Assembly: GCA_964019335.1 (NCBI GenBank)
Contig: OZ025692.1
Span: 186,001 to 250,000, forward strand
Origin: Diplonema japonicum
Taxonomy: Eukaryota > Protista > Euglenozoa: Diplonemea
DNA: 64,000 nt
Reading direction: 5' to 3'
Shown: positions 3,632 to 53,868 of the stretch, piece after piece
Layout of the letters: the number at the start of each line of letters is the position of its first letter
Position numbering within the stretch: position 1 is the stretch's first letter
The notes under the pieces: generated by a model
Database searches by the model: none
Told to the model about the DNA's origin: nothing
What the model saw: the letters and a program-made list of their open reading frames with translations, nothing else
Made by a program: the position numbers and the translations under genes

Positions 3632-3686
<55 letters not shown>

Positions 3687-6466: not shown

Positions 6467-6499
<33 letters not shown>

Positions 6500-20463: not shown

Positions 20464-20517
20464 CTGTGTAACATTGTGATACGAAGAAAAAAGAAGAGAG
20501 AAAAAAGTGAAAAAAAG
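20464..20517 (-). promoter_or_regulatory. Putative SL trans-splice acceptor (polypyrimidine tract + CAG)
   Basis: Minus strand TTTTTTTCACTTTTTTCTCTCTTCTTTTTTCTTCG...ACACAG, with the AG 11 nt before the ATG at 20452, inside a 75-bp intergenic spacer. Confidence 0.6.
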
Positions 20518-20527
20518 CATATGAAGG

Positions 20528-21841
20528 TCACATCTTTGGCGGGCCCTTGCTCGCCACCCTGACAACGGTCGGTGCGTAGTAAGGAGACGCACTGAGGCCC
20601 AGGCTTCTGCACAGGGCACTGCACTGGTGCATGGCGAAGAAACGCCCGATCGTTTCACGCCCCTTAAAGAGACTCTTTCGATGGTGCTTCGAAGCCCACG
20701 ACCCGTGCTCGGGCGCGCTTAAAGCCGTGTCAGTGAGTGCAATCGTGACCTCAAGAGGGCAAGCACTACAGAATTTAGAGACGATGACTATGAGGGTCTG
20801 ACAAGACCTAGAGAACGTGAAATGTGTAAATGCATGCATGCGTTCTTGTAAGTTCGCACTACGCAGACTGGTGTTGACCCTTTTCGAGTCCCCGTTCCAC
20901 AGAGAGTACGACATGTCCCGTTCCAGAACACCATACAACTGCCCTTGCCTATAAGGGTTTGGGGTGTCCAACCTGTAGTAACACGACGCCTTTCCTTTAG
21001 GATCCACCTTCAGGAGGTGTGCCTCGGTGAAGGTCACAGGGTCTCGCAGGATGGTCTTGTTCCAGATCCGCGCGAACCCCGCTGCGACAGTGTACCCCGC
21101 AACGTCTATATAGTAAGCCTCCTTAGGAAGGGGGATCCTTTTGGCTTGGATGGACATGCCACGGTAGTCCCAACCGGCAAGCCGTGGATCTTCCATGAAC
21201 AGCGAGCTCGCTAAGAACTGCTTGTTGGAGCACCCTTCGAAATAGCTGTATGTTGCCCGTTGTACAATCGACCTCTCTGTGGCGCTGGCATCGACCGAGC
21301 ATGACACAGGCCGTGCAGCCCACGTGTTCTCAGTAGGGTGGAATGTGTACCGTGAGCCTGTTTCGTCGATCAACGAAGTCGCGGAGCTGAGGGGGAGCAG
21401 GGCCGGGCTCAAGTACTGTGGAGGCCTGGGCTGTCTTGGAGTAGGGGTTCTCGAGACTTTCTCTATCTTACACCTGCTGACTATCATCAAGGGCCCGGCT
21501 GATCGTTTGCGGAGAACGATTACTTCTGTTGGTTCTTTTCCCGCTTTCCCTCTACCCCTTGGCTGCAATTTATTGGCACTCATACTTGGTGCACGACGAG
21601 GCAGCGATTTTTCAGGATCCTCAACTTCCTTCTTAGATGCTTCTTTCATATCACGCGACGCTCCCCTTGCGACAAGCTTTCCATCTACCATTACTATCCG
21701 CCTTGTCCCCGCGGACAACGGTCTCGCCACAGGCGGCGGCGTGGGCGTGTGACCTGCATCGACGTCACCTTCTTCCAATGGCACACCGCCCTGCACAAGA
21801 ATCTTGCCCAGCACATATCGGAGGTCTTGCAAGGTGGCCAT
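20528..21841 (-). CDS. Alpha-kinase (eEF2K/MHCK family) domain protein, probably catalytically degenerate
   Basis: C-terminal HAFTHFTF, LTD, GRETIGRFFAMHQCSALCRSLGL match the alpha-kinase end (AFSHF...TDP...FF..H.C...C..LGL); DxQG motif absent. Confidence 0.7.
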   Translation of the reverse strand: MATLQDLRYVLGKILVQGGVPLEEGDVDAGHTPTPPPVARPLSAGTRRIVMVDGKLVARGASRDMKEASKKEVEDPEKSLPRRAPSMSANKLQPRGRGKAGKEPTEVIVLRKRSAGPLMIVSRCKIEKVSRTPTPRQPRPPQYLSPALLPLSSATSLIDETGSRYTFHPTENTWAARPVSCSVDASATERSIVQRATYSYFEGCSNKQFLASSLFMEDPRLAGWDYRGMSIQAKRIPLPKEAYYIDVAGYTVAAGFARIWNKTILRDPVTFTEAHLLKVDPKGKASCYYRLDTPNPYRQGQLYGVLERDMSYSLWNGDSKRVNTSLRSANLQERMHAFTHFTFSRSCQTLIVIVSKFCSACPLEVTIALTDTALSAPEHGSWASKHHRKSLFKGRETIGRFFAMHQCSALCRSLGLSASPYYAPTVVRVASKGPPKM

Positions 21842-21983
21842 CCGTCCTCATAGCCTATGGTGTGGTGGGTACGAAGCAAATAACGAAACGAAGAAATAAG
21901 AATGACTTTTAGTTGCTGACTTATGAGCAACTTCTAAAAAAAAAAGGGGGGGACTCTATATTTTCTTTTTGGTTTACTCCGTT

Positions 21984-22877
21984 TCATTCCTCTTTTTTGT
22001 GGTTGGTGAACGATTTTGCCTTCACGGTACACTTCTCAAGGGAGCACATGTCGGAGGGTCGGGACAGGTTCTCGAAGAGCTGGAGGCCGGTGAGAGACTC
22101 GACTTCAGAAGTGGGGACCTTGTATGCGATAGGGGCGTCGTTGGAGGGGCTGTTCGGCACAATGAAAGAAGCACTGTAGTGGTACCCCCTGGAGGTCTCG
22201 ATGACAATCGTTTTGAAGAGGTGAGTAGGTACAGCCACGTCGTGTGGGCCAACTACCTTGTACGTCACTTCCTTAGCTCCATTTTCAGAATGTTGTTCGG
22301 GCTTCCAGATGGGCCCTGAGGCAACCCATGTGTGGGGGTGCTTCTTTGCGACAACCCTGACCAAGTTCTCCAGGTGGAACCACGACCCGGTGTTTGACCC
22401 GCTGTCTTGAGGAACCACATTGTGATTCAGGATGAAAGTTGCGTCCATTACATCTTGGTTTAGCTTCATGTCGGCGGCGGGAACCATGTGCCCTCTCACA
22501 TAGTCGCCGTGGGAACGGGCTTCTTTGTAGTCGGTAAGGGATGATCTGAAGGCTTCAGGAACTTCTTTTGCAGCTTTAAAAGAGCTTTTCTCACGTCCAA
22601 CAGAGCCTTTCAGGCTCTCTGGAGTGAGGTGTTCCAAAACCCAGTTGGGGCACCTCGTCCTCCAGTTGTCGGAAGTCACGAAAGACTGTTCCACCACGTT
22701 GATGTGCTCGTCAGACGGCAGGCCCCACTTCACCAGATCCCCCTTCATCTCCACCGCGCCCTTTAGGATGATCTTCTCTTCTTTCTTCCCTTCGTTCCAC
22801 CACATCCCGCCGACCAACCCAAGGGACCCCCCCGTCACACACCCCAACCCATACAGCATCCCTTGCTTGCTAAGCAT
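21984..22877 (-). CDS. ENDOG: Endonuclease G / Nuc1-type DNA/RNA non-specific endonuclease
   Basis: PNWVLEHL, RGHMVPAAD, TF..N.VPQ..N.G.W..LE, SGP, VAVPTHLFK, EVESLTGL. Confidence 0.88.
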   Translation of the reverse strand: MLSKQGMLYGLGCVTGGSLGLVGGMWWNEGKKEEKIILKGAVEMKGDLVKWGLPSDEHINVVEQSFVTSDNWRTRCPNWVLEHLTPESLKGSVGREKSSFKAAKEVPEAFRSSLTDYKEARSHGDYVRGHMVPAADMKLNQDVMDATFILNHNVVPQDSGSNTGSWFHLENLVRVVAKKHPHTWVASGPIWKPEQHSENGAKEVTYKVVGPHDVAVPTHLFKTIVIETSRGYHYSASFIVPNSPSNDAPIAYKVPTSEVESLTGLQLFENLSRPSDMCSLEKCTVKAKSFTNHKKEE

Positions 22878-23007
22878 CGTTGCGTTCTGTGAGGCGGGTG
22901 TTTGTTAATTAAAGATAGATAGCTGAAATAACAATCTATGTCTACTCTAGTAGGGGGGGGAGGGGGGTTTTTTTTTGGTTATTAAAACTCTAACATATCT
23001 ATAATAT

Positions 23008-26000
23008 CTAAGGCGCTGCTGCGGGTGTTGGGAAGTAGACCCCGTCTGCGTAAACCACTTTCCCGCAGTACGCACAGAACCGGCCCCCGTTCCAAGGGTG
23101 GCCGCAGTGGGTACAAGCATTCTGAGCAATGGGCAAGGCAGGGATGGGATGGGGTTTGCCTGTTGGAGTTGGGGCTGTAACGACCATCTCGATATCTGTC
23201 GTGCTGACACTATCCCGCGAGTAGTGAGGCTTCTTGTGAGTTGCTGGTATGGTGGAGGTCCCGGAGCTGCTGCGGCTGATTCCCTTTGTTGTGCTTGCTG
23301 TAGAAGACCTTTTCGGCGGTACAGGAGGGGGGAGGACTTTCCCCGAGATCTGTGTGCTTGTCTCTACTTCCCATGACACGCTGCCCGAACTCTCGGAGAG
23401 CTCCATCTCTTCGTCTATCCTCTCAGGAAGAGGGTTTTCCCTAGCAGGGCTCCCTTCCACCATGTCGTTGATGGAGCCCTTCGACCTTGCTGGTGATTGG
23501 CTTTTATTCATATTGTACCGCCGTATCACGAGCACTAGCACACAGAGACCGCACGCAGCAAGCCCAGCTAAGGCGGGTATCACGACGAACTGCATCCACG
23601 CGAACCCGTCATCCGACTCATCGCCCGGAGAGGCTTGCGGTGCTGTGTCCCCTTTCTCGACCTCGAAGCCCACCATGTCCCATCCCATCACCTTGAAAGG
23701 ATTATTCGTTTTCCCCGCAAGTACGTATTCGGACAAAGCAGCCACCTTCGCGTCTGCTGTAGTCTTGTTGTCGGCGAGTAAGCTGAAATTCACCGTCACG
23801 GACCCCGGCTGGACGCCCAGGACCTGTATCTTTAACGGAAGCACATCAACAACGCCAGATATGCACGCAGGGACAGCAGAGGGTGTGAAGTCGTCCACGC
23901 TGATGGCCAGCTTGACCTTCACAGCTTTGGACGCAACGCTCGTGTCAACCGGCGTGATGCAAGATGCGAAGTCCGCAGCCAACTTCGTCTGACAATCATC
24001 GAAAGTCTGGAGGCACTGCTGAATGGAAGCAAGTTCACAGCTGGAGAACGAGGTGAAGCAGGTACTCCTGAAAACGGAGTAGATGGCCGGCTCCGTACAA
24101 GCAGGAGGCTCTGGTGCATTAGACGGCTGCTGCGTGGGAACTGCTGTGGGTTCTGCTGTGACTGGACTTGTCTGCTCAGGCTGTACAGTAAAAGACGTCT
24201 CGCTTGAGACAACGGAATTGTAGACAACACACATGACGTAGCTTATGTTTCCGCCGCGGGTTACTCCTGGCACTTGCATCGACAGCTTTCCAGAACTCAA
24301 TGCTGAAGACACAGACGGCCTAGCCCGGCCGGTGCAGTCGCCTTCCTGCACCTGCAAAACAAACCCATTCGAACCAAGATCAGTTCCTGACACATTCACT
24401 TCTGTGTACCCAAGGCTCTCTTTGAATACCGCCTCCACACTGTCCACATGCGGTATTCCTGTCACCGTGGTTGACCACCCATTGATCCTTGTCTTGTTTG
24501 TCCTCCACATGGGTAGATCGATGGACCAGCAGAGGCCGTATTGCCGTGTGACGCTGTATGTGGTTAACACTTCGCGCGGCAGGGCAGCACGCAGGGCACC
24601 GCCGCTGAATGACGTTGTTAGCGGGTCTTGAAAGGCTGAGCAGTCACCTTCCATCGACAGCCACAACAGCGTCTGCGTCAGTTGTTCCGTTGTGACAGCT
24701 ATCCACGCAGTCCCGTCCCACACATCGGACACTTGTGCCGTACCGCTGATCGAAGGGAAGACAGGCGGTGCGGGTGAGATGAAAGCCACCCCGGTGGCGA
24801 AGACACCAGAAGTCATGCTTGGTGCCCAGCATAATACCCACTGGCCCGTCCTTTTCCCTCGCTCAGCAAACAGGCCAGAGCTTCCAATCATCTCTAATCC
24901 CGAAGCACCCAGCAGGTATCGCCCTAGTTCGTCGCCATCACAGTTCACGTCACGAACCGACAACCAAATAGGAGGAGCCACGACGTGTGCGCTGGGCAAC
25001 GGTACTATGCTGTCTGTTAAAACCTCCGTTAGCGAAAGAGTGATGGGATGTGCAGCGGAGAAGTTGGGTTCTTTTTGCAAGCTCACCTCTACATTACTGA
25101 CGGCAGCCCATTCACTGCCCCCTTGCACCGCCCAACACAGACTATACGCTCCGCCTTTGTACCCAGCGAGCGCAATGTTCACGTTCAGAATACCATTCTG
25201 TCCTATGGCCACTGCTTGTGAAACACTAGAGGTGCAAGTGTTGTCACTGATCTTTGCTTGAATCCCTGGGTACAGGTCAGAGCCCGTTAATGCTATCTCT
25301 GCAGCACCATCTGCTATCATGCCTAAAGTGAGGGAATAGGTGCGTGGTGCAAAACTAGGCTGCCCCATCCATTCCAAGGTGAGGCCTGTGTCATAAGTGC
25401 TGCCTTGCAGCGCGTACGCAAAACATATAAGGTACTGCTGATTAGCAGTCAGTCCAACCACTTTAGGGTAGTAGACAGCAGTAGTGTCCTGAACCTCCGC
25501 ACGTACCATGTTGAGACCTCTAGCGCATGCAAGACCATTCTCTGAAAGGCCAAAATACATCTGTGAATCAAGGTAGCTACCAGTGAGGAAAAGAGAGTTT
25601 GTAGCAGTACCATAAGTGCGTTTAGGAGTGTCCTGAGGAGTGAACACCGCAAGCCTCGGAAGTACTACACGTACGTCAGACTCTCTGAAAGCAGCCTCGA
25701 TGTTTATCTTCCAACACAAGACGGCCGTAGACCCTGGGAAGGCCTCTGCGTACTGCCTGTCGACGTATGCTATGCCATTCAGAAAGTCGAAGTCATCACC
25801 GCAGTTGTTGCAATTGCTGTTCAAGCACAGCTTCCCCTCGAGGGGCTGGTTGAGGTCTGTGCCGTGCACCGTGATGTTAATGGTACCGGAGACGGATGAC
25901 CAGAACTCTGACAGTGTGGGTGAGAAGATCTCAGCGGTTACTGAAGGAAGGGGTAGTACATGTACCTTCGAGGGATGCTGTCTCACGTCCAACCCGGGTG

Positions 26001-28551
26001 TCGATGGTCTCCAACATATCTGGTACTCTTTCCCCAGCACCAGCCTGGTGTCCATTTCCGCAAACGTGATGTGCGAAGACGACGTGTTCGGTGTCCCTGG
26101 CAGCCGTGCAGCTGTCTCCGGCAACGGGCTGCACTCCGAATCTTGCTCTACGACAGCCACCCACACACCCCCGATGTTCGTGCCAGTGAGTGGGAGCTGG
26201 AACCCGTCCTCCCACAGAGGGTAGGTCACTATGATGTCGTTAGCCGAATTAAATACAGGGCGCTCCAATATCTCCAATTTGATGGCGGTCGGGTCTCCGT
26301 TGTGGCACACGGTGTGCACCCCTGGAGTAACACTTCTGGGCACTGTGAATATGGCTTCATCACAGTACGGCAGGTCGCCAGTCGGGCAGATAATCGCTGC
26401 GCTGGGCCTTCCCTCCATACATCCCATTGTGAGCTGCATGTTTGTTTGCAGGAACTTCCCATGTATAGTGATCACAGGCGGGGTGTTGCTCTGCACGTCT
26501 AGTTCGTTCACTTGGTGAGTTGTGGCAGTTGCTGTGATAACTGCCGCGGGAATCACTTTGTGCACGAGCCCAGAAGTATTCCAGCTTGTCGGGGAAGTTG
26601 TTGAGGCAGCCCAGCAGATGGCAACCGCCACAGCTTCTTGAAGACCAGATGACAGTGCGAGGTCGAGCACGGAGTCCGAGGGCAAGACGAGGAAGTCGTT
26701 TGCCTCCGATGGCACAGCACGAGAGCCGGTCGCAGTACCACAGGTGTCATCCAGTGAAATGCCGATCCACAGATCTGTAGTGGGGATGAGGGATGTGCCG
26801 CGGATGGTTATGTTGACACCCCGCTGCCCGAGGCCAATCCACGGCACTTGTGCAGGAACTGTGAACACAGGCACGTCTGCAAAGACGACAGTGACACCCG
26901 TCGCAACGACGTCAAGCCAGTCTGCACTCCCCGATGGCTCTGTAGGGTTCGCAGCAACGCAGAGCTGCTTCTCACCACTCGATGAGATCGCCACATCTGC
27001 ACTGAGGGGTGAGTTCCCCACCAGCTGTATGCCAGTCAGAGGGGCTACAGCCTGATCGCCACACGGACCAAACACAACCCACAGCATTGAAGGCCTGTTC
27101 CTGGTGGATAAGTACATTCCTGGAATGGTGATGACAGGGTCTTCCCAATGCTGCGCAATGCTAATCTCATGCCTGGTAGTGCCCTCGAAGACAGGGCGCG
27201 GTGTGGTAGTGATTGTGACGTTGGTGGGTTCCCACACACCGTCCTTCACAGAGTAGCAAACGGACAACGGCTGCCCTGCTTGCGTCACAGGAAGCGGGAA
27301 CGACCCGCTATCAGGCGTACTGCTCTGCAGGTCGTAAGAAGGTGTTGAGGCGTCGCCTGCACACAGTGGGTGCGCGTGAAGAGTGACTCGTATCTGCTGG
27401 TCTAAGCTGCTACCCGCAAGGACTACTTCATAGCGAGGTGCCATGAGGGACTCCGCGTAAGTGAGCGCTAGGGAATTTTCGATGAAGGTAGGCGGTGACT
27501 TGAACCTCACGTACAGCGGTGTGCGTCTGAGTTCGGCGACGTCCGGTTCGCCATTCCATGCAGAGATGCACACTGCGATGTCTGTGTCGTGCTGCATGTC
27601 CGTCAGCTGCGAGATGTCAATGGTCGCACTCCGTCCGTCCGGCAACGGGACTATCTCGAGTATTGGTCGCTTGCATTGTATGCCGACCCACACATTTGTG
27701 GTCAGACCTTCGCCTGTAATGGTTGCAGTCACATCGCCCTTCGTGATGACAATGGTGCCAAAGTCGAGTGTGGGGTGCGGCGGTGTGACGACAGTCACAG
27801 GCGCTGCTGTAAGACGAACAGGAAAGGAAGACGATGTCAGCGTGGGCCCGTGCCAGCACAAAGTGTATGACGTCCCTGCTGCAAGCGACCCAGATGTGAA
27901 AACGCCCTCAGAGGTGAGAGCTGTGAGGTGTGTGGGAACGCTTGATCCGCACCCGACTGAGCTTTCTTTCAACGTTGCTAAAATATCAGAAGCCAGACCA
28001 ATGCCTTTGAGAGTGAGTTTGAAGGGCGATCCACCAGCAGAGGCACCCAGCGCCTCAGCGAGTGTTGGTGTAATAGTCTCCTGCGTGAAGGTGATTGCCC
28101 GTTTCTCGCAAACGAAGACCATCGCACCCTGGCAGTCCCACGCATAGAGCTTCCCGTCCTGCGATATAAAACCACATTGGGAGGCTTCGCCTGAGGGCAC
28201 ACTGCCTGCCCACAGGCTACTATCCACAATAGTGCCGTCCCCCCATGCCCACTTGCTTGTCGTTGTGTTGTACCGAGCACCGACCCATACATACTGCTGC
28301 ATCTTAGTCACGGTTGTGGCTACATAGCTGGCAGTTTCTGTGGTCCGTGGCTGGGCAAGACTCCCGCCGTCCAGTCGGCAGAGCTCCTTCGAGTTCTCCC
28401 AATTGCTAGAAGTCCACATCAGTCTATAGCAACTCCCTCCCGTTGAATGGTACACAGGTATGTCTGCCGCGTTGCACTTGTCCATGCAAGGACACGAATC
28501 ACTGACCCCCACTGCTGCAGTCACCAAGACCACCAACCACCGCAACAACAT
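23008..28551 (-). CDS. Large type I surface protein: C-type lectin domain + about 13 IPT/TIG-like repeats + TM
   Basis: Signal peptide; CTLD (GSCYR..WE..CRLDGGSLA..VWVG..WAWGDGT..C..WDC..FVCEK); repeats of about 100 aa with ITIxGxxL...YxLCW; TM VVIPALAGLAACGLCVLVLVI; C-terminal CTHC..FCAYC zinc ribbon. Confidence 0.85.
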   Translation of the reverse strand: MLLRWLVVLVTAAVGVSDSCPCMDKCNAADIPVYHSTGGSCYRLMWTSSNWENSKELCRLDGGSLAQPRTTETASYVATTVTKMQQYVWVGARYNTTTSKWAWGDGTIVDSSLWAGSVPSGEASQCGFISQDGKLYAWDCQGAMVFVCEKRAITFTQETITPTLAEALGASAGGSPFKLTLKGIGLASDILATLKESSVGCGSSVPTHLTALTSEGVFTSGSLAAGTSYTLCWHGPTLTSSSFPVRLTAAPVTVVTPPHPTLDFGTIVITKGDVTATITGEGLTTNVWVGIQCKRPILEIVPLPDGRSATIDISQLTDMQHDTDIAVCISAWNGEPDVAELRRTPLYVRFKSPPTFIENSLALTYAESLMAPRYEVVLAGSSLDQQIRVTLHAHPLCAGDASTPSYDLQSSTPDSGSFPLPVTQAGQPLSVCYSVKDGVWEPTNVTITTTPRPVFEGTTRHEISIAQHWEDPVITIPGMYLSTRNRPSMLWVVFGPCGDQAVAPLTGIQLVGNSPLSADVAISSSGEKQLCVAANPTEPSGSADWLDVVATGVTVVFADVPVFTVPAQVPWIGLGQRGVNITIRGTSLIPTTDLWIGISLDDTCGTATGSRAVPSEANDFLVLPSDSVLDLALSSGLQEAVAVAICWAASTTSPTSWNTSGLVHKVIPAAVITATATTHQVNELDVQSNTPPVITIHGKFLQTNMQLTMGCMEGRPSAAIICPTGDLPYCDEAIFTVPRSVTPGVHTVCHNGDPTAIKLEILERPVFNSANDIIVTYPLWEDGFQLPLTGTNIGGVWVAVVEQDSECSPLPETAARLPGTPNTSSSHITFAEMDTRLVLGKEYQICWRPSTPGLDVRQHPSKVHVLPLPSVTAEIFSPTLSEFWSSVSGTINITVHGTDLNQPLEGKLCLNSNCNNCGDDFDFLNGIAYVDRQYAEAFPGSTAVLCWKINIEAAFRESDVRVVLPRLAVFTPQDTPKRTYGTATNSLFLTGSYLDSQMYFGLSENGLACARGLNMVRAEVQDTTAVYYPKVVGLTANQQYLICFAYALQGSTYDTGLTLEWMGQPSFAPRTYSLTLGMIADGAAEIALTGSDLYPGIQAKISDNTCTSSVSQAVAIGQNGILNVNIALAGYKGGAYSLCWAVQGGSEWAAVSNVEVSLQKEPNFSAAHPITLSLTEVLTDSIVPLPSAHVVAPPIWLSVRDVNCDGDELGRYLLGASGLEMIGSSGLFAERGKRTGQWVLCWAPSMTSGVFATGVAFISPAPPVFPSISGTAQVSDVWDGTAWIAVTTEQLTQTLLWLSMEGDCSAFQDPLTTSFSGGALRAALPREVLTTYSVTRQYGLCWSIDLPMWRTNKTRINGWSTTVTGIPHVDSVEAVFKESLGYTEVNVSGTDLGSNGFVLQVQEGDCTGRARPSVSSALSSGKLSMQVPGVTRGGNISYVMCVVYNSVVSSETSFTVQPEQTSPVTAEPTAVPTQQPSNAPEPPACTEPAIYSVFRSTCFTSFSSCELASIQQCLQTFDDCQTKLAADFASCITPVDTSVASKAVKVKLAISVDDFTPSAVPACISGVVDVLPLKIQVLGVQPGSVTVNFSLLADNKTTADAKVAALSEYVLAGKTNNPFKVMGWDMVGFEVEKGDTAPQASPGDESDDGFAWMQFVVIPALAGLAACGLCVLVLVIRRYNMNKSQSPARSKGSINDMVEGSPARENPLPERIDEEMELSESSGSVSWEVETSTQISGKVLPPPVPPKRSSTASTTKGISRSSSGTSTIPATHKKPHYSRDSVSTTDIEMVVTAPTPTGKPHPIPALPIAQNACTHCGHPWNGGRFCAYCGKVVYADGVYFPTPAAAP

Positions 28552-28614
28552 GGTGGTCACCCTCCCCCCCTTCCCCTCTGAAGAAGCGTTTTTTTTTTTT
28601 TTTTTTTTTTTTTC

Positions 28615-28676
28615 CTAGGTGAAAATTGGATAGTATAAAAAGGAAAAAAAAGCCGAATAAGAAAGAAGGAAAAAGT
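28615..28676 (-). promoter_or_regulatory. Putative trans-splice acceptor (polypyrimidine tract + TAG)
   Basis: Minus-strand pyrimidine tract followed by CACCTAG, then an A-rich 5' UTR leading to ATG 28551. Confidence 0.55.
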
Positions 28677-28690
28677 AGTACGCCTCAGCG

Positions 28691-30091
28691 CTATATTGAT
28701 ACAACTCTCTTTTGTTCGGCTGCTTCGTGGTCCCTCTCCAACCAGCCTTTGGTGACATGGGGTGTTGTGGGTTTCGAGAGAACGTTCTTGCAGGACCTTC
28801 TGAACCGTTCAAGAACGGCTCGCTTCGTGGCGATGAACTCGGGGGGGAGTGTGGCGTCGAGAACTGCCATGTCAACGGTCTGCTGGAGCTCCAGAACGAG
28901 CCCGTGGTGATAAGGCCCCGCTTTTTCTACAACAGTAGATGCGATGATAAGGAAATCGGTGTAGGCGAGAAGCTTGCCAGGTTCAGGGGAGGCGTGGGTC
29001 ATAAGTTTAAGCAGACGCGCCACAGAGGGAAGGAGTTCAAGATATCCCCAATTGTTCTGCAAAAGCCCGACCAACAACGGTGTGAACTCAACCGATTGGA
29101 AGCCTGCCATGGCAACGTCCGGGTCTGCAACGAAACAGTCTCTTGCAAGACGAACGTAGTACTGCAGAGACCATGTTTCCTTGAAACGACAGCCTTCCTT
29201 GATAACAGAGAACACGGTCATGGGGAGCCCATCAGCGTCATTATACTTCCCGTTCATCTCCGAAGATAGTACCTCAGGGTAGCATCTTAAAATACAGCTA
29301 AGCAGCTGCGAAGGGTACCTTGCTTCGAACACTGTGTCGGCGTCGTCTTGTAAAATCGACATCAGGTGAGGGATAGCTGTCCTTGACTGAACCAGCATTT
29401 TTTCGAACTCGCCAGAGCGCGGCTGGTGGATGCCAACCAGTACAAGAGCTTTTAAGTTGAAGATGGTATCAACTTCGCTATTTGACGAGTCCTGCAAGGA
29501 TTTAACCATGTGGTCCACCATGTTTTGTCGCAGCATGAAACGAGCGTTTTCTGGTGCCTGGCAGAGAGCTGCCAAAGAGGCTCCAAACAGCCCTGGAGTC
29601 ATTTTACCGTTGTGTCTTACTTCAACGATCTTCTCCAGAAGATCTTGCCGGATGATATATTCGTTGACTGGCCAGTCGGTTTGAGGGGATCCCCTGTCCT
29701 TTGCGAACAGAGCTAGGTAGTGAAGGCCTCTTTCAAGATCTCCTTCCTGGAACCACTCTACTAACGCGTTCATCTGGTCCTCCATGGGTTTGTTCAGAAA
29801 CTTCTCGTCGTCGGTGTGCTCCAGCACTCCCTTCTCCATGCTTTCTATTAGCTCTAAGGCAGGGTTCATGGATGATCTCAGGGTACTTTTGCTTGTATCA
29901 GCGGCGCCTTGTATCCAGTCTGATACCGCCGAAGCTGCCCGCCCTTCGTTCTGAAAAGCATCCATGAAATACAAGCAAGACTATAATAGGTTTAAAAAAA
30001 AAAAAAGTTTTTTTTTTTTTCATACCGCTGTGGCGCCAAGCATCCATGGCAATCCCTCCTTTAAATGCTCTGCTGCACGTACTCTCGACAT
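28691..30091 (-). CDS. Hypothetical alpha-helical (ARM-like) protein, 2 exons
   Basis: Exons 30091-30026 and 29980-28691. A 45-nt GT-AG intron joins MSRVRAAEHLKEGLPWMLGATA in frame to the 427-aa ORF. Confidence 0.7.
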
Positions 30092-30274: not shown

Positions 30275-30324
30275 AGACAAAGGCCAGTGTTGGTGACGCT
30301 TTGCACAAGCACTGTCTACTTGAT
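30275..30324 (-). repeat. Short relic of the hAT-like family 3' region
   Basis: ATCAAGTAGACAGTGCTTGTGCAAAGCGTCACCAACACTGGCC is nearly identical to 51662-51704 and partly to 16107-16144. Confidence 0.7.
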
Positions 30325-30867
30325 ATAAAAAAAAAAGGTTGTGGATAATCATAATGGAGAGGTTAAGAGGGAATATAAAAAAAAAAAGAAGAAAGAAAAG
30401 GAAACTGCAAAGATTTTCCTCGATTTCCTCTTTTTTTTTCCACTTCATAGACAAGGACAAAAAAAAAAGTTGGAAGGTAATAACTCAACGCAAAATAAAA
30501 AAAAAAAAAAAAAAAAAATCGAAAACGGCGCTCAGTACGACCATCACAGTTGGCTCCAAGTGTACCATAATTACATGGGGTGGGGGATGTCTAGATAAAC
30601 AACACATTAGCTTCCTTGCAGTAGGGTGGGACATTTTTTTTTTTTTCTCTTTTGCAGAAGCCAAATGCGATCCATGTTTACCCCTTTGAGAGGTCTATTT
30701 TGTACCCTAAGCGAACCGTCGTTACGCACCTAGGCCCGGCCAAAGGTCTTACTGCCGAACTATTAAAGAAAAAAAAAAAAAAAGATACAAGCGGAGTTAA
30801 AAACAAAAGAGGTTAGAGGAAAAAAAAAAAAAAAAAAAATTAGCTCGAAGTGGACTTCTTTGGGTCC

Positions 30868-31530
30868 TCAAGGATGGAGGTAGATCTTATCCCGCCGGTC
30901 ACTGTTTCGTGATGTGCTACGATTCTTGGACAGTCGCTTGATACGAAGGGCCTCAAGGACCTTGTCGCTGGTGTGGGTTAACTTCTTACCGTCATCACCA
31001 TAAAGAGGCTCATAACGGGTTTCCCGTCTAGAGGCACGCTGAGAGATGTAATCAGCGTTTTCACGAGACACCCTCGTGTAGGACTCGTTCACCACGCGTC
31101 GGTAGGCCCGTAGCTCATCCTCGGTTCTTCGTGAGCCGATGATGACTGCGTCATAGGTGGAACGGGGGTTCTCGTTGGAGGAGGTCTCGATTTTCGATTT
31201 CCATTCTCTCAGTGTCTTCAGACAATCCTTCTGCCACTTGTGCTTTATGACAATACCGTGCTCGTTCAGCCTCCTGGGGGGCATGCTCTTGGCGGATTCT
31301 TTCTCAAGCCTCGCTTTTTCCTTCCTCTTCTGTTCCCTGTTCCACTCCCTCCTGGCCTCCAGCCTTTCTTCCGGGACCCTTCTTTCTACGAAATCGTCAC
31401 CGTCGGCATTCCACGCCTCGCTTGTGCTGGGCAGCTCCTCGCCGATTGGTTCGTCGTCCTCATCGTCCTTCGCCCAGTTTAACCCCAGAGTCCTCCATTT
31501 GGCCAGTCCAGTCTTCGGGGTGGTGTCCAT
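30868..31530 (-). CDS. Hypothetical charged protein
   Basis: 220-aa ORF with coding-like composition between homopolymer spacers; A-run before ATG. Confidence 0.75.
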   Translation of the reverse strand: MDTTPKTGLAKWRTLGLNWAKDDEDDEPIGEELPSTSEAWNADGDDFVERRVPEERLEARREWNREQKRKEKARLEKESAKSMPPRRLNEHGIVIKHKWQKDCLKTLREWKSKIETSSNENPRSTYDAVIIGSRRTEDELRAYRRVVNESYTRVSRENADYISQRASRRETRYEPLYGDDGKKLTHTSDKVLEALRIKRLSKNRSTSRNSDRRDKIYLHP

Positions 31531-31854
31531 TTTTTATTTTTATTTGTTTCGCCTTTTTTGTTTTGTTGTATACTCGCATAGCGATGAATGATGAAGAAGG
31601 ATATAAAAAAAACATTTGACAGAAGGGAACAAAAAAAAAAGAAATAATGCGGCAATGGCAATGTAACAAGTTGTGGAGGAGGTGGGGGGGGGGTCTAAGA
31701 ACTCTAATAATTCAATAACAAAGAAGAAAAAGAAGGGGGGGGGTCTATCTAAAGGGTGCGAGCGGGAATTCTTTTTTATCAAAAAAAAAAAAAAAGAATC
31801 ACAAAAAAAAATAATAACAAGTTTTAAAAAAACAACAAATAAAAAAAAAAGAAT

Positions 31855-33471
31855 TCAAGGACAAGCAGCGTAGGAAGACCGTATGGCCCGTATCTCAGAG
31901 AGCCAAGCGTTCTTGTTCGCCTCGACGGTTTGTGCCGGGTCATGGTGTTTGACGGGGTTGTTGGGGTTGCCGTTTATCTGAGGAGAGAAGGTGCAATGTT
32001 CCTCTTCAGCTTTCTGAAGCTCCCGACGAGAGTGGGAAAGCCGGATTTCACGTCTGCGCTCCCAGTTGTTCTGCTTAGCGAAGGTTGAGCTGTTGTCCTT
32101 CAACACTGTGCTGGGCTGTGCCATCGACTGCAGTTCCAACTCATCGTGTGCTTTACGCTGTTCAAAGAGGCTCAGCCTGTTGCGTTCATACTCTTCTTTC
32201 TTCGCAACAAGAAGCTCCACCCTGTCCTTGTCTCTTGTCCCGTTGGCCGATCTGCTCATTCTGTCTATCTCTTGGCTTGCAGCAGAGACGTAAGGCGTGA
32301 AGGATTCGTTCTTCACCTCAGCGCGTACTGCTTCTATGGTGGCGTGCGACTTCACATGCCGTGTGTCCTTGAGTAGTCTTGCTGCAGAATCTTCGCCTTC
32401 CCTTTCCGTTTTGAGAGAAGCTAGCAGTTTAGAGTACGCCCCCAGAGATGGTTTCCTTTGGCGTCCCTTCTTCGTGGACATTTCCGACCATTCCGCTGCA
32501 CGCCGCTTGCGATACTCCTTCTGCTTCCCTTCCTCCACAAGGTGTTCCCACACGTTGCTTGTGCGCGGCTGTGTTGTTGTTGTTGTTGCCGCGTACTTGT
32601 TCACCTTTGGAGTGAACAAGGACTGGCCTGTCTCGGGGTCCTTCAGAGGAGACGCCCTGGGTTTTCCCATATGAGCATTCTTCACAGGTGTGGATATTTC
32701 AATCAGTCTTGGTGAAGGTTGCGACGTGCAGTGGCGGGATGAGTGGGATCGTTTGACAGGTGTGTCTGTGCGGGAGAGGCTTTCCTCTCGTCGGCGGGTC
32801 GCTTCTGCTACCTTTGCGTTGTGATCCTTGAGCAGCGACTCCTCCACTCGGCAAGACCGGTTGGCCGTGATCTTCTTGCTGATGGGGTTGAGGGAAGGTG
32901 TGGGTTGCACGCCTTCCAGCTCGCTTGATTCCTTCAGCTGCTGGCTGCGGAGGATCTTCTGCTCCTTGATGTACTGCCATTCCATCAGGTGGTTGGTTGT
33001 TCTTGTCATCCCACGGCTTGATGAGTTGATTTGAGGGGTGCAGTCGGGTGTTTCTGTTGGTGTCAGGCTAGCCTGTATTGCGGCTCGTTTTGTTGCCTCT
33101 TTGTACAGTCTTTCGTGGGCGTGTTGTCGTTTCCCCAGCGACCTCGACCTTGCTGTGATATGCGGGCCTCGTAGTTGCAGCAGTTCCTCCATCTCTCTCC
33201 CTCTTCTTAGGATTTCTAGTTTGGCGTTGTATTCGTCTTTTCTCCTCAGCAGCTGGTCCTCTACCTTCCCTTCCCGGTTGAGCTTCTTCGCCAGGGAGGT
33301 GATGACGGGCTTCCCCTCCTCCGTTTCCGCGGCGCTGCAACCCATCTTTGCCCCAGTGAAGGAGGCCAGTACGTTGCCCTTGCTGGTATAAGGTGCTTCA
33401 ACAGCATCGAACTCGCCATAAAGGTCCACAGGCAGGATCGTGGTGGAGTCGGACCATGCCCCGAAGGACAT
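31855..33471 (-). CDS. Hypothetical basic coiled-coil protein with (C)TF.P.IN-type repeats
   Basis: 538-aa ORF; recurring CTPQIN, FTPKVN, FTPYVS, CTFSPQIN motifs resembling those in protist cytoskeleton-associated proteins. Confidence 0.8.
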   Translation of the reverse strand: MSFGAWSDSTTILPVDLYGEFDAVEAPYTSKGNVLASFTGAKMGCSAAETEEGKPVITSLAKKLNREGKVEDQLLRRKDEYNAKLEILRRGREMEELLQLRGPHITARSRSLGKRQHAHERLYKEATKRAAIQASLTPTETPDCTPQINSSSRGMTRTTNHLMEWQYIKEQKILRSQQLKESSELEGVQPTPSLNPISKKITANRSCRVEESLLKDHNAKVAEATRRREESLSRTDTPVKRSHSSRHCTSQPSPRLIEISTPVKNAHMGKPRASPLKDPETGQSLFTPKVNKYAATTTTTQPRTSNVWEHLVEEGKQKEYRKRRAAEWSEMSTKKGRQRKPSLGAYSKLLASLKTEREGEDSAARLLKDTRHVKSHATIEAVRAEVKNESFTPYVSAASQEIDRMSRSANGTRDKDRVELLVAKKEEYERNRLSLFEQRKAHDELELQSMAQPSTVLKDNSSTFAKQNNWERRREIRLSHSRRELQKAEEEHCTFSPQINGNPNNPVKHHDPAQTVEANKNAWLSEIRAIRSSYAACP

Positions 33472-33495
33472 TTTTTTTTTCTTTTTTTTTTTCTC

Positions 33496-33553
33496 CTAGA
33501 AAAAAAAATTGTTTTTTTGAAAAAAGAAAAAAAAAAAAAGCAAAGAGGGGGGA
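33496..33553 (-). promoter_or_regulatory. Putative trans-splice acceptor (polypyrimidine tract + TAG)
   Basis: In the 91-bp spacer between xpt and the next gene: pyrimidine runs, TTTTCTAG, then an A-run and ATG 33471. Confidence 0.55.
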
Positions 33554-33562
33554 TTTACTGTT

Positions 33563-34153
33563 TCACAGTAGCACGTTCTCGTGGGTCAGCGGCACGCCAC
33601 CTTCCATGAGCTTCACGAGGCATTCGATCCTCGCACCGGGGTGTTCCTTTTCGATTTGCGATCTCCCTGGTTGGTAGCTCTTCTCCAGCAAAGCAGCGAA
33701 CCCTGCCACTGTGGCTCCACAAGAAGTGACGAGGGATGCCAGACAGGTCATTGTGTGGCCTGAAGCGATGATGTCGTCAGCTATGAGGACGCAGTCGGAG
33801 GGGGAAAGGGCTTCCTTTAAGATGGAGAGGGTCACTTCTTTGGAGGTGGTGTGGCTTTTAGATGTAATATCAACAGTAGTCTTCCCTTTGAACGTGGCGG
33901 GGATGGCGCCTCTTGTGTAAATAAAAGGAACGTCGAGTTCCACCGCCAAAGGCTGGGCCAGCAGGAGCCCGCTGGTGGGAGCTGTAAGAACCTTCGTTAC
34001 CCTTGTTCCTGCAAACCTCGAAGCAATGTCAATCCCACAGTCCCGCATCATCCTGGCGTCCACCGTGTGGTTGAAGAACGACGTCATTCGTATGATCCCG
34101 TTCTCGAGGACCTCTGACTCCTCTATGACCTTCTTGCGTAGCTTTTCCGTCAT
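33563..34153 (-). CDS. xpt: Xanthine phosphoribosyltransferase, Bacillus Xpt type
   Basis: LRKKVIEE..VL..SFFNHTVD..M..G..IASRF..VTKVLT..SG resembles the B. subtilis Xpt N-terminus; PRPP-binding motif VLIADDIIASG; EKSYQPGR. Confidence 0.8.
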   Translation of the reverse strand: MTEKLRKKVIEESEVLENGIIRMTSFFNHTVDARMMRDCGIDIASRFAGTRVTKVLTAPTSGLLLAQPLAVELDVPFIYTRGAIPATFKGKTTVDITSKSHTTSKEVTLSILKEALSPSDCVLIADDIIASGHTMTCLASLVTSCGATVAGFAALLEKSYQPGRSQIEKEHPGARIECLVKLMEGGVPLTHENVLL

Positions 34154-35300
34154 TTTTTTTTTTTTTTTCTTGAAAGTAGTGGTAGCATTGTTGGGCTTAT
34201 CCTTCTACAGGTTAACCCCCCGGCTATGCACAAACAAAAGTTGAAGGTCTTCGACCGCATACTGGAAACGGATCGTCAAAAGGGACCAGGTACTTCTTCA
34301 GATAAGAGCTCTCCACGACCACTGGTCAGATGACGGCGGCTCTGTCGATGCAGTGGAGTTGCGCGGCGAGGTACGCGGACCTAGAGAGACTTCTGATCCG
34401 ACTGTGCACAAACAGCAATCAACCGACTCTTCCCCCCCCCCCCCCCCCCGAAAATTGCGGTGACGTATGGAGGGGAAAAAATAATAATAACAAGGTGATC
34501 GTAAGGGAACCAGGGGATTGAAAAGAAAAGAAGAAAAAAAAGAAAAAAAGACGAAATAAATAAAAGAAGATAAAATATTTCTTTGTAGTTCAGCTCATGG
34601 GGGAGGGGGGGGGCAAAGGGGTTCTGGGGTATGTTGTTGGCTTTTATTTTTCCCCCTCCCCCCCTGCTTCAGCTTTCTTTTTTTTTTTCCCTTTTTTTTT
34701 TCTTTTATGTTTGTAAATAAATAAAAAAAGCAAGGGGAGGGGGGATCGAGAACTATAAAAAAAAAAGAAGAAAAATCAATGTGGAAACAAAAAAACAAAC
34801 AAAAAAAAATCTTCTTCCATTTCTTTTTTTTTTCCCTCAATTGATACTTACTTTTTTTTTTCTCTTGTATTTTTTTTTTATTTTTTTATATTCTTCTTCC
34901 TCAGGTAAAAAAGAAAAAAAAATCCTACTTTTTTTTTAGGGGGGTTTTTTTTTTGAACTCCCTCATTTCTGTATTCTTTTAAAATTTCCATGGGAGGGGG
35001 AGGGGGCAGTAAGAAAAAAAAATCTAATTGACCAAGTAACAAAAAAGAAAAGAAAAAGCAAAAGCAAATCAACCGTAATAATCGAAAAAAAAATGGGGAG
35101 CGTGCCAATGGGTTACCACGGGGCAGTTCTTTCTTCTTCTTTCTCTTCTCGTGAAGAAGAAGAATAAGAAAAACTATAAAAAAAAGGGGGGGGGAAGGGG
35201 GGAAACACAGTCGAGCAACGGTTTCAGTTTCCTAAAGCTTTGTCCAGAACTCCTCGCCAAAAGAAGAAAAAAAAAAACGGTTTGGCTCTTTTTCGGACGG

Positions 35301-35331
<31 letters not shown>

Positions 35332-35623
35332 TCGATACTTAGCATCTGTGGACAGTACATATCCTGAGATAAGTACTGCATGCCACCACTACTTTTTTTT
35401 TTGATTTCACAAGAAACTGTTAAAGACAAGAAAAAGCCACACACGCAGCATCTTCATTTTTTTTTATTCAGCCAACACATACATGGGAGAAAGAAACAAG
35501 GAGCAGGGGGGGAGAAGCACATAAAAGATTTCATTGTTTTTTTTTTTTTTTTTTTTTTCCTTTTTTAAAATATTTTGTTCTATTTTTTTTTCCCCTCTTT
35601 TTTTTTCCCCCCCCTCTGCCACC

Positions 35624-36799
35624 CTATCCAAAGGTGGTCACAACCTCTTTACCTGAGCCTCTGACAAGCAGGGTGGGGCCAAGGTCCTTCGTCAGCGTCT
35701 CAACAAATTCCATCACGTGCTTGGGGGAGATGCTGTTCATCATAAGAGGGAAGTTCGTGACAATCAACCGGGCTTGAGAGGAGTGCTTCTTTATCTACGT
35801 TTTGAAGTTTTTTTTTTTTCCCCTCCTTCCTTCCCCCCCCCCTAGGGCTATGCTGGCAGGAAACGTGGAAACGTTTCCGTTTCCGTTCCCGTTTCCATAC
35901 TTTTCAAAATTCTTATGGAAACGGCTTCCTTCTTAAGGAAACATAAGGAAACGTTTCCGTTTCCGTATCCGTTTCCGTTTCCCTTTTTTTCAAAAAATGC
36001 ATGGAAACGCGTTTCCATGCCAGCATAGCCCTAGGGGGCGGTCAAAGGGGTTTGCGAAATTAGGCCAAAAAAAAAATCTTGCACATTTGTGACACAAAGG
36101 CGCAAAAAACCACCTTAACCACCCCAAAGTCGCCTAAAAACCCATTTTTGGGCCGAGTTTCGACGAAATTTGCAAGTTGGCTACCCTAAAACGCCATTTT
36201 AATTTTTTGTGACAGAACCGGTACTTTGCTGCCCTCTACGCTGTACGAGGGCACAACTGCGCACTGACCTTTCAAGTAAGCTAAAGGATGACCTCAAAAA
36301 ACTGGTTGATAATCGCAAGTTGGACACCTAAGGGGGCGAGACGGCACCAGAGCTGCATGGGCTACTCTTGAACGACATGTAGGACGATTTTTACCCGCTT
36401 GCTGCTCGTTCTGATGACTCTGATAATGTGTGCACAAAATAGGATTCTGCAGGTACCGGTTCTGTCACACCCGCTCAAAATTGTGAATACGTCACATAGA
36501 AGTCAACAAAAACCCCCAAATAGCGGCGGAAAGTTGTTTTTTTTTTAGCATCTGGGTGGAATTTTCGGGTATAATTTACCCAGGGGTGCGTTTCCCGAAA
36601 AACACGAATTTCGAGCTTTTTAAGGGGCGGTGACCCCCCCCCCCCCCCCCCCCCCCCCCGGCGGTCATACATCTTTGTTGAAGGCCTTCGCCACACCACG
36701 CATAAAGGCGAAGCCATCGTCCTCCTCTCCTTGAGTCGGGGACATCGGTTTCAGTTCTTGTTCTTCGGGAGTGCCCTTCTCGGACATCACGATGGGAGG

Positions 36800-36836
<37 letters not shown>

Positions 36837-39560
36837 CCCCCTCCACAAACCTGCTCCAAGCCCCTTAGCCCCATTGCTGTTAACGGAAGCCCTGATGCCT
36901 TCTGACGACTCTCGTCAACCTGCTGTGTGATGTCTGCTCCGCCTCTGTTCTGGAGGATCCCATGGTAGATTTTGGAAAGCGGCACAATTCCATGATCGGC
37001 ATCGACAACTTTTTTTTTTTTTGTTTTTTTTTTTTTTTCCAAATTCCCACATACTGTCATTGACATCCAGCTCTTCAGAGGTAAGGTTGATGGGGATGAC
37101 CTCCGCCTTGATCCGCACCTCGTCCAGGAAGCGGGAGATCCTGACCGTGAATTCTTCTGTCGACTCATTGTTCTCTGTGTACTCGTTGATAACAGAGAAG
37201 ATCCTCAACCTGCAGCCCCTCCACGCCTTGTGCAGCCTCAACAAATGAGGAAGCAAAATCAACAGCCCACCATCATGCACAATCCACCACACATCAATCG
37301 TGTTGGTCAACACCGCCCTTGCCGACATGTATGTAAGGAGTTTGGACCCGTTCTTCAGAAGGATGACGGCCTTCTGGCATCCGACGATGGCTTTGACAAG
37401 ATTAATATATGTTCCAGCTTGTTGATCGGTGTAGGATTGGTCTGAAGCCCATTGCGGCCAACCCATGACAACTGTATTGGGGCGGAGTGCCCCGCATCCC
37501 ATCGACTGTAATGCCGCGCTGACAGCTTCGTTCAGATCGTTGTGGTAGAGGAGTACTCTTGGGAAGCCTTCCAGACCGTTCTCTTTCATGTGCATGCGCA
37601 TCACCTCTGTGAAAATCTCGCTCTTTGTGAACTCGTGGGTAACATCGCCTTTAACAAGCCCCAGCGTCATGAGCAAACCGCGCCCTTTCTTGAGCATTGC
37701 CGCGAGTGTTATCAACTCCGGTCGCACGGGGTTGCCGTTCTCATCCAAGTTCAGCAACACCAGCAGCTGCGGCCTCCAGTTCTTCGGGTGGTAGAACGTG
37801 CTTCGGTCCGTCAATGCGATTAGGTTATCCCTGGCAACCTGGAACCTGATGCCCGCAATGGAATCACCCCAATCCTTCTTCACCTGCTGCTTTCTAATGT
37901 ACACAAGCAGAAGCACCGCGAACACAAACGAGATAAGCGCCATCTTGAAATCAATGAGCAACATCAATGTGAGACACAACAGGAATCCGAAAATCGCTGT
38001 GTGCCACGAGAAGTACCTCCACGTGGGCCTCCACCCCGGGGCACGCAGCACCGTGAGAAGGAAACAGGAGAAGTTGACGGTTGCGTACATGAGCAAGAAG
38101 AACATAGTGATGATGGGGGTGATGGCGTCGAGGTTGCCTGCAAGACAAGGCAGGGCCGCGATGAAGCATGTCAACCAGACAGCTTTTGTGGGTTCACCGT
38201 TAGATGCGAAGGGCGCCAAGATAGGCATTGTACCATCAAGCGCGATGGCAGACAAGAGACGGGGCGCACCGGTGAGGCATTGCAGCCCAGCACCCACGCA
38301 ACTCATGATGATACCCATGTTGACTACGACCTTGTGGGGCCAGGCTGCGAGCGTCACAATGAGCTTATTGTCCATCAGTGTCTTGTTGGACAGCACGCAG
38401 CCATAAAGCCACACAACAACGAGGTAGATCACAGTCGTCACCGCGATGGCGCTCAGCGTTCCGACTGGGATCGACTTCTTTGCGTCGAGCAGCACACCAG
38501 ACCTGTTAGACCCCGCCATGATCCCTGTCACAGAGGGATAAAACAGGCCAATGCACCACAGGAAGTCGGGTGTTAAACTAATCGACGAGTCGTATGTCCA
38601 ATTCGTTCCCATGTTGTCACCTATGATGACAGAATCGCTCCCACCTGGGAGATCGCCGTAGAACGCGGACACACCAGCCAAGAAGCACCCAAAACACAAA
38701 CAGAAGATGGACACAAGCACGATGGCCAAGAAGGCCTGCGCTGACATGTTGACGTATTTCACGCCAACAGCAACGATGCCCGCGAGCACGAAGCACAGGA
38801 TGAGCGACAGGAAGACGGTCTGTCCTCCGCCCATGCCCATGCTGTCCTCAAGGCTGAACCCGTCTTCCAAGGCTTCAACCCCACCGAGGATGTACATACT
38901 CGAGGCAATGGTGGTCCCGAGGTAGAAGATGATACCGATGGCACCACCCACCTCGTGTCCTAAGTTGCGCGACACCACGTAGTAAGGCCCACCTGCTTGG
39001 ACCTGGCCGTTTGTCGCGAGCGCAGAGAGTGACAGCGCGGTGACAAATGTCGACAACGCACAGAGAAGAACAATACCTGTGGCTTGGAACACACCTGCCT
39101 GTGCGGTGATCCACGGCAGTCTCAAGAACAGAATAACACCAAGGATGTTCTGCAAGCAGGGTAGGAAGACACCCTTGAACGTTCCGAGTTTTTCAGAGGC
39201 GGCAGGTTCTTCCGTGGCTGCCATGCGGGGGCTGCCCTCACCAAAGTCAGACGTGCTCCCAACGCTGTTCGTGGAGTACTGACGGGACCGTCCGATCTGG
39301 TCGCTCCCCCACAGCAGCGTCTGCTGCTTGGACATCGTCATCGTTGTGTTGTTCATGCTTGTCGACTGCGTGCTGTCGTTCCTGCTGCCCACCGGACCGA
39401 ACGTCGAAGCAGGGGGGTGGTAGTGCTCTTCCTTGATCCTCTGCAGCACCCTGTCCCTCGGTACAGAGTCGTCTATGTCAAGCGAGGCACACGACGCCAC
39501 ACTCGCTTCACAATCTTCAGGATGCATCCCCGGAGATCCATATTTTGTAGGTGTCGCCAT
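35624..39560 (-). CDS. SLC12 cation-chloride cotransporter (KCC/CCC type), 4 exons
   Basis: Exons 39560-37055, 37008-36851, 36802-36671, 35794-35624. KLGTFKGVFLPCLQNILGVILFLR, PSVTGIMAGSNRSG, KNWRPQLL, IDVWWIVHDGG; the last exon supplies the canonical end LLVRGSGKEVVT. Confidence 0.93.
35847..36029 (+). mobile_element. 183-bp MITE of the same hAT-like family, inside an SLC12 intron
   Basis: TIRs GCTATGCTGGCA; both ends align with the 15942-16586 element in opposite orientation; flanked by CCTAGG (35841-35846, 36030-36035). Confidence 0.85.
36047..36659. mobile_element. Unclassified insertion of about 613 bp with internal 17-bp inverted repeat
   Basis: GGGG...CCCC termini flanked by GGCGGTCAAA / GGCGGTCATA; perfect inverted repeat TGTGACAGAACCGGTAC at 36208-36224 and 36453-36469. 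Confidence 0.5.
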
Positions 39561-39687
39561 GTTTTTTTTAAAACACCCGACTTCTCAGGGTGTTCTCTGA
39601 GCGGAGTACGGGCACGGGAATCTTCAAAAAAAAAAAATAGAAAACGAAGAAAAAAAAAACTGTAGCCCTGGAAAGGGTCCAAAGGGG

Positions 39688-46723: not shown

Positions 46724-46758
<35 letters not shown>

Positions 46759-47627: not shown

Positions 47628-47667
<40 letters not shown>

Positions 47668-53836: not shown

Positions 53837-53868
<32 letters not shown>

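Follow-up and report, generated by a model that had tools for sequence, protein, structure and literature searches.

Cis- and trans-splice acceptors with opposite base composition in a gene array of Diplonema japonicum

Introduction

Organisms that carry out both cis- and trans-splicing must keep the spliced leader (SL) off their internal acceptors. The accepted explanation for this exclusion is competition from an upstream 5' splice site, and in the outron model of C. elegans an acceptor is trans-spliced if it has no 5' splice site upstream of it. A 64,000-nt stretch of the Diplonema japonicum genome (contig OZ025692.1, positions 186,001 to 250,000; hereafter the window) raises the question whether base composition could also take part. 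In a first-pass annotation, the spacers upstream of genes in the window were described as carrying a pyrimidine tract ahead of the trans acceptor, while cis acceptors were preceded by A-runs, and the difference was proposed to be a code by which one spliceosome separates the two reactions. Here, we confirm that the compositions of cis and trans acceptors differ sharply and that the contrast is real, and we weigh the explanations that may account for it.

Sequence and evidence analyzed

The window was analyzed together with a total of 200 kb of flanking sequence as a stretch of 264 kb, in which the minus strand carries 89 of the 99 open reading frames (ORFs) of at least 300 aa and those on the plus strand overlap these. 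The same-strand array looks like one polycistronic unit. All splice sites discussed below lie on the minus strand, and coordinates are those of the window unless stated otherwise. RNA evidence was taken from contigs; homopolymer zones were masked as repeats, and the contig ends listed yielded one leader junction and one indirect intron junction. Run X7 has zero differences to the window and a depth that varies from gene to gene, and was therefore taken as RNA of the same strain. Run X6 has a flat depth and continues into an intron, and was therefore taken as DNA. Aligned contigs of runs X1 and X2 diverge by about 1-7% from the window, and these runs look like RNA of a related strain.

Sixteen introns were curated in the window by eye and by reading frame, from GTATG sites and run-containing donors. 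This set is small and leans to low-complexity introns, and its generality rests on published RNA-seq. Exons were submitted to Pfam singly rather than as joined spliced models. De novo intron calling from codon bias and ORF joining over the 264 kb was discarded because the antisense and permuted-donor controls nearly equalled the real donors (17 against 11 calls; 35% of the control sites passed at 60 codons) and long open frames abound in every phase of this genome.

Spliced leader and trans acceptors

The claim that SL trans-splicing operates in this organism is supported both by the genome and by a transcript. A genome-wide count of the leader 3' end with an adjoining GT gives 169 exact matches, compared with 0 for the control, and the leader is nearly identical to that of D. 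papillatum. The transcript maps to an acceptor at 31553..31650, where an X7 contig aligns from 30849 to 31553 and then carries 16 extra letters. The reverse complement of these letters, GTTTCTGTACTTTATT, is the 3' end of the leader, and the leader has therefore been added at AG 31554/31553. A 22-nt A-rich 5' untranslated region (UTR) separates this acceptor from ATG 31530. The acceptor is preceded by acaacaaaacaaaaaAG. The 20 nt directly ahead of the AG, tatacaacaaaacaaaaaAG, are themselves A-rich, and the T/C tract lies at about 31580-31650, i.e., 25-90 nt further upstream. An earlier AG at 31574/31573 is bypassed in the X7 contig.

Four further spacers had been singled out, and read on the sense strand all of them have the order that was ascribed to them, from pyrimidine tract through AG and a short leader segment to ATG. 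The paired coordinates mark the G of the AG and the beginning of the tract, and the ATG follows 11 to about 65 nt downstream of the acceptor. The predicted outron 3' end at 20464..20517 has a T/C tract at 20517-20478, AG 20465/20464 and an 11-nt leader segment before ATG 20452 of a 1160-aa ORF. At 28615..28676, a T/C tract (28676-28618) and AG 28616/28615 are followed by an A25 leader segment and ATG 28551 of an ORF which Pfam identifies as a C-type lectin; this site falls in one of the zones masked as repeats in the RNA evidence. The predicted site at 33496..33553 belongs to a spacer of 92 nt with T-runs (33553-33498) broken by A7, AG 33497/33496 and an A-rich segment before ATG 33471; RNA contigs end within the A-run of this spacer. 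The fourth predicted site, at 39622..39659, has T-runs at 39659-39626, AG 39623/39622 and a segment of about 60 nt before ATG 39560, the start of an SLC12 transporter according to Pfam. The leader segments had also been called often A-rich, which fits three of these four sites but not the one at 20464, where the segment is G-rich. The same upstream layout was seen, as had been proposed, for the Rab28-like gene (ATG at about 3262) and the HSDL2-like gene (ATG 2194), although the predicted acceptor of the latter stands behind an A-run of about 38 nt.

This layout extends beyond the individual sites. Pyrimidine runs of 12 nt or more lie within 150 nt upstream of 69 of the 107 putative starts in the 264 kb (64%), compared with 6% of the 150-nt coding stretches used as controls. 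When the upstream regions are anchored at the ATG, T peaks at 0.35-0.38 between -90 and -61 and A reaches 0.40-0.46 between -30 and -1.

Two further observations concern leaders and gene starts. About 19 units of a (CA)n repeat (57386-57425) abut the ATG of a CEP44-domain gene, and the preceding ORF is in frame across the 115-nt spacer, which imitates a read-through stop. Elsewhere in the genome, a leader exon followed by GGTGGGGATAACATGGAAATATAAG... lies at 1481-1560 of locus L001, and GGTGGGGATAACATGGAAATATAAG... recurs in the 264 kb without the leader (window-relative 51962, and 163304 on the flank).

Composition of the cis-introns

The curated set comprises 15 tiny introns of 34-75 nt and one of 876 nt, with a set median of 48 nt. 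The donor is GTATG in 11 of the 16, the others being GTGTG, GTTTG, GTAAG and GTATT, and the acceptors are AAG (7), CAG (6) and TAG (3). The interior of the 15 tiny introns is 74% A. The claim that cis acceptors are preceded by A-runs is borne out by the whole set, in which A makes up 87%, T 7% and C 6% of the last 20 nt ahead of the AG, a composition different from the polypyrimidine tract of a U2-type intron. The A-runs range from 12 to 54 nt, and in 16/16 introns the acceptor is the first AG past the last A-run. A YTRAY branch motif 5-50 nt upstream of the acceptor is found in one of the 16. The reading phase is open across the junction in 15 of the introns. Nine have a length divisible by three, and an in-frame stop is missing from several; retention of introns that combine these two properties would encode poly-lysine.

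Among the 168 sense-strand GTATG sites, 23 are followed by a run of at least 10 A, compared with about 4% for typical permuted pentamers (approximately 3-fold), and a single one is followed by a T-run, which is no enrichment. Genome-wide, the pattern GTATG..A10..AG was matched 5021 times and its backwards control 2679 times; for GTATG..T10..AG, the corresponding numbers are 1248 and 771. When the Ras and kinesin profiles were mapped across the genome, most domains were uninterrupted.

The contrast between cis and trans acceptors

Pyrimidine runs of 12 nt or more are present in one of the 16 introns versus 69 of the 107 upstream regions (Fisher p=1e-5). Fifteen introns contain an A-run only and none contains a T-run only (binomial p=6e-5). 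On the sense strand of the 264 kb, homopolymer runs of at least 8 nt number 555 for A, 527 for T, 100 for C and 64 for G. As A- and T-runs are thus about equally common whereas introns are divided 15:0, some strand-specific force must act on the introns. The separation is a strong tendency and not a strict rule.

The intron that departs from the others is a mixed one at 29981..30025 (45 nt), which reads GTATG, A13, C, T13 and AAACCTATTATAG and keeps the frame in phase 0. Its T13 tract sits 11 nt ahead of the AG. In contigs of X7, X1 and X2, the match to the window ends at 29981/29980, beyond which these contigs have 93, 61 and 31 additional letters, respectively; X6 continues to 29986. The 93 letters of X7 fit exon 1 (66 nt) together with part of an A-rich 5' UTR. 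Because 93 and 61 letters exceed the 39-nt leader, this intron appears to be cis-spliced despite its U-tract; the evidence is indirect, as the joint itself falls within the repeat mask.

The individual introns illustrate the recurring order of donor, often a G-rich stretch, A-run and AG. In the COQ5/UbiE methyltransferase gene, intron 1 (3799..3846, 48 nt) consists of GTATG, a G-rich stretch, A22 and AG, and intron 2 (3628..3702, 75 nt) of GTGTG, a G-rich stretch, A54 and CACAG. Both are fixed by the continuity of Pfam PF01209, as the exons match profile positions 3-175, 177-207 and 208-233 of 233. Removal of the first intron of the Rab28-like gene (3158..3204, 47 nt, A-runs ending in AAG), which has a Ras family match, joins ...KVLVVG with DGAVGKTS and so restores the P-loop. 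Its second intron (2677..2717, 41 nt) reads GTGTG, AGG, A30 and CAG, with a single phase open across the junction. In the SAPS-domain gene, the ORFs 6508-7926, 6103-6504 and 5641-6099 lie in one frame with single stops between them; these stops sit in introns of 48 nt (6463..6510; A31, CACAG) and 42 nt (6067..6108; A25, CCAG), both multiples of three. The PRA1 gene has an intron of 51 nt at 11178..11228 (GTAAG donor, C8, A9, A21, AG), and one of 47 nt precedes the PRA1-domain exon at 11067..11113 (GTATT donor, A17, TCAG).

Three introns were placed in the SLC12 gene. Two are short, at 37009..37054 (46 nt; A15, C, A13, G) and 36803..36850 (48 nt; GTTTG donor, G-rich stretch, A33, G). The third, at 35795..36670, is the 876-nt intron, in which runs of G27 and T11 and an inverted-repeat element are found. 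It ends with a G-run, A12 and CTTCAAAACGTAG, where the first AG is used, and the T11 run is also followed by AGs. The last SLC12 exon matches positions 362-417 of the 418 of the Pfam SLC12 profile. The remaining introns lie in the TMEM208/SND2 gene (46725..46776, 52 nt; G8, A33, G), near the 3' end of the SMC gene (47629..47682, 54 nt; A33, G), at 60267..60300 (34 nt; A16, CAG) and in a leucine-rich repeat (LRR) gene. The LRR candidate (53825..53891, 67 nt; A19, G, A19, CCTAG) is the weakest of the set, as a 25-codon open phase on both sides was not found.

A candidate at 44132 was dropped since the aminotransferase ORF there fits no frame-consistent junction. Candidate introns with T-runs were also found in the flanks, at L023:2038-2128, L024:6668-6744, L008:7807-7863, L007:8660-8725 and L007:4191-4236, in genes for GH113, CFAP58, a NIF-phosphatase, a cofilin-domain protein and dyskerin. 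They have T-runs or T-rich interiors of up to T44, and several are shaped as a T-run followed by AAATT/AAAC...AG. Pfam continuity left these five (window-relative 101861, 92725, 88236, -3256 and -17873) unconfirmed, as the domains miss the junctions.

Comparison with other systems

The first-pass annotation presented its observation as one that had not been described. This does not hold for the intron half, as the poly(A) tract of D. japonicum introns is already published: 10,131 RNA-seq-supported introns have been reported, with a median of 41 nt, 98% GT-AG ends and G/GTATG donors (PMC12621601), A is their most abundant tract base, and U2AF1/2 are present (PMC12621601, RNA 2025;31:1826). YTRAY occurs in 13.9% of the published introns, and other diplonemids have C-rich intron tracts (PMC12621601). 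The same study provides RT-PCR and genome-wide RNA-seq support for splicing from outside the window's own data. Our introns resemble the published ones in being tiny and GT-AG, in the G/GTATG donor, in the A-dominated last 20 nt and in having few YTRAY motifs. However, leader acceptors and the discrimination between cis and trans were not analyzed there, and the A-tract was taken as a sign of a flexible spliceosome (PMC12621601). The novelty claim stands for the other half, as neither a comparison of cis with trans acceptors for D. japonicum nor the idea of a code was found in searchable papers, and opposite cis and trans composition within one species was not found in the literature searched.

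The relatives show how unusual the contrast may be. (Para)Diplonema papillatum shares the leader system of D. japonicum, and it likewise has a GGTATG-type donor that is complementary to U1. However, the 30-bp context upstream of its 23,720 leader sites was found to be 'very similar' to that of its cis acceptors (PMC10161547, Fig. S12), whereas the two are of opposite composition here. In Euglena gracilis and in Leishmania donovani, one and the same tract is found in introns and in outrons (PMC11170887). E. gracilis likewise uses a single spliceosome for both reactions, but both of its acceptor classes have the same C-rich tract and CAG (PMC11170887); compositional separation is neither needed nor seen there. 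The SL acceptors of kinetoplastids resemble those of D. japonicum in their same-strand arrays, the U/C tract upstream of the AG and the shortness of the 5' UTR. They also share a closely related 39-nt leader, with the end ...CTGTACTTTATTG. In kinetoplastids, the acceptors are coupled to upstream polyadenylation. The spacers here can be shorter than 100 nt, and kinetoplastid cis-introns universally keep polypyrimidine tracts (PMC11613528). The contrast between cis and trans acceptors is apparently lineage-specific.

Explanations for the contrast

We lean, with restrained confidence, towards the reading that the contrast mainly reflects the different needs of two substrates of one U2-type spliceosome. 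An outron would end with a U/C tract, usually 20-100 nt before the start codon, and an AG, to which the 39-nt leader would be joined ahead of a short purine- or A-rich 5' UTR. Since outrons do not possess their own 5' splice site, they would need a strong pyrimidine tract, which may recruit U2AF, U2 and the leader ribonucleoprotein (RNP) as in kinetoplastids. The tiny cis-introns (about 34-75 nt), in which a GTATG donor and in many cases a G-rich stretch precede a long A-run, would be recognized by intron definition, and a nearby donor bound by U1 could make a pyrimidine tract dispensable. The A-run could supply branch adenosines at any position. It is also free of AG until its end, so that the first G or CAG after it would become the acceptor by the first-AG rule that all 16 introns follow. 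We infer intron definition, the branch point in the A-run, the first-AG mechanism and the selective cause from these features. Selection against leader capture or premature cleavage may reinforce the lack of U in introns, but we consider this contribution improbable.

Several points weigh against the two-substrate reading. One trans acceptor is verified by RNA and the four spacers named above are predictions, the intron set is small and partly hand-picked, and the branch point is placed by deduction. The reading explains neither why A was chosen over other fillers that lack U nor why D. papillatum keeps C-rich tracts. In addition, the 15:0 excess of A-run-only introns, in a sequence with 555 A-runs and 527 T-runs, calls for strand-specific selection or origin, and a sorting role of composition would supply one.

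Such a sorting role was the original proposal. A U-tract would be the signal to add the leader and cleave upstream, introns would have been driven to the opposite composition, and A-rich sequence would be read as cis-only. A sorting function of the contrast is plausible, but as the explanation it is in our judgment doubtful. In its favor are the strand-specific partition of 15 A-run-only to 0 T-run-only introns and the sense-strand GTATG sites followed by a T-run, which are unenriched and if anything depleted. A-runs and T-runs are about equal in overall number, and the partition is therefore not a global base bias. Furthermore, with spacers down to 92 nt, a stray U-tract and AG within a gene would mimic a gene boundary.

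There are, however, exceptions. The T13-bearing intron at 30025-29981 appears cis-spliced, the 876-nt SLC12 intron contains T11 followed by AGs, the verified leader acceptor at 31553 has an A-rich proximal 20 nt, and the acceptor predicted for the HSDL2-like gene follows the A-run of about 38 nt. The genome-wide excess of GTATG..T10..AG over its control suggests that U-tract introns probably exist in some number. Moreover, D. papillatum, E. gracilis, L. donovani and the kinetoplastids trans-splice with pyrimidine tracts in their cis-introns. Since cis and trans tracts are similar or shared in these relatives, the pressure that was proposed is present there too but has not led to the contrast seen here. 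The canonical U2 small nuclear RNA (snRNA) of D. japonicum also speaks against a code.

A stricter version of the same idea has two non-overlapping modes of 3' splice site, one with a U-tract for the leader RNP and upstream cleavage and one with an A-tract, and introns kept A-rich by selection against capture. Here, the A-tract would be invisible to the leader machinery and would be recognized through intron definition, perhaps assisted by a factor that binds A. We regard this version as unlikely.

Lower still do we rate the view that the A-runs are by-products of how introns originated or grew, either by homopolymer slippage or by the spread of insertions bearing poly(A), and are tolerated without a role. 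Tiny introns might need little besides GTATG and AG. The view agrees with a genome very rich in runs of all four bases, with the wide variation in A-run length (12 to 54 nt) and with the intron lengths, nine of 16 being multiples of three and several lacking an in-frame stop. The A-run trait is also weak or absent in other diplonemids and is therefore recent. Yet under neutral slippage A-runs and T-runs should be equally frequent on the sense strand of introns, which is not what we see, and this strand asymmetry makes a purely neutral origin of the A-runs unlikely. In addition, the order of donor, G-rich stretch, A-run and first AG recurs at the 3' end of the 876-nt intron, which argues for constraint at the acceptor.

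The idea that a compensatorily altered U2 snRNA reads the A-runs is rejected, as the U2 snRNA (RF00004, 139-141 bits, 7 full copies) has an intact GUAGUA branch-site box; an adaptation to A-tracts is therefore not visible at the RNA level. At least seven near-identical U2 copies are spread over different contigs. One U2 gene lies about 800 nt from a signal recognition particle RNA gene on contig C12 (L026 1501-1693 and 2468-2772).

Other genes and elements of the window

Further genes named by Pfam encode an alpha-kinase, a non-specific endonuclease, a phosphoribosyltransferase, and proteins with B9, ELO and aminotransferase domains, in addition to the C-type lectin, SLC12, COQ5, Rab, PRA1, TMEM208, SMC and CEP44 genes mentioned above. 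Runs of 18-30 G or C occur just past stop codons, in the 5' parts of introns and in spacers, for example at 3520-3546, 36634-36660 and 4733-4750.

An element of about 60 nt lies on the minus strand at 34179-34239, a short distance upstream of the phosphoribosyltransferase gene, and a related copy is found near 34400-34440. The depth of the DNA-like run X6 over this element is 127,000 compared with about 200 in neighboring genes, and this excess suggests several hundred genomic copies; the RNA runs are very deep there too. Contigs link 34216 to 34398 and omit 181 nt. The intergenic stretch 30530-30760 has a 6- to 35-fold excess of X6 depth, high RNA depth and a long terminal T-run. A dispersed repeat and a cluster of small-RNA genes are both conceivable here, and the Rfam scan of the window returned zero matches. 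The inverted-repeat element in the 876-nt SLC12 intron, at about 35850-36060, resembles a miniature inverted-repeat transposable element, with ends ctagggctatgctggcatggaaacg ... cgtttcctgccagcatagccctagg and GGAAAC repeats inside, and a similar end is found near 16600-16650. This element is a transposon within a cis-intron.

Implications

As the A-tract half of the contrast is already in print, the surprise is limited. If the opposite contexts hold genome-wide, D. japonicum would be a natural system for studying what the leader RNP requires of its acceptors, and it would offer a test of whether splicing can proceed in the absence of a pyrimidine tract and of what reads an A-tract. Should the split into two modes of 3' splice site turn out to be true, it would be the first compositional signal that sorts cis from trans acceptors in any trans-splicing eukaryote.

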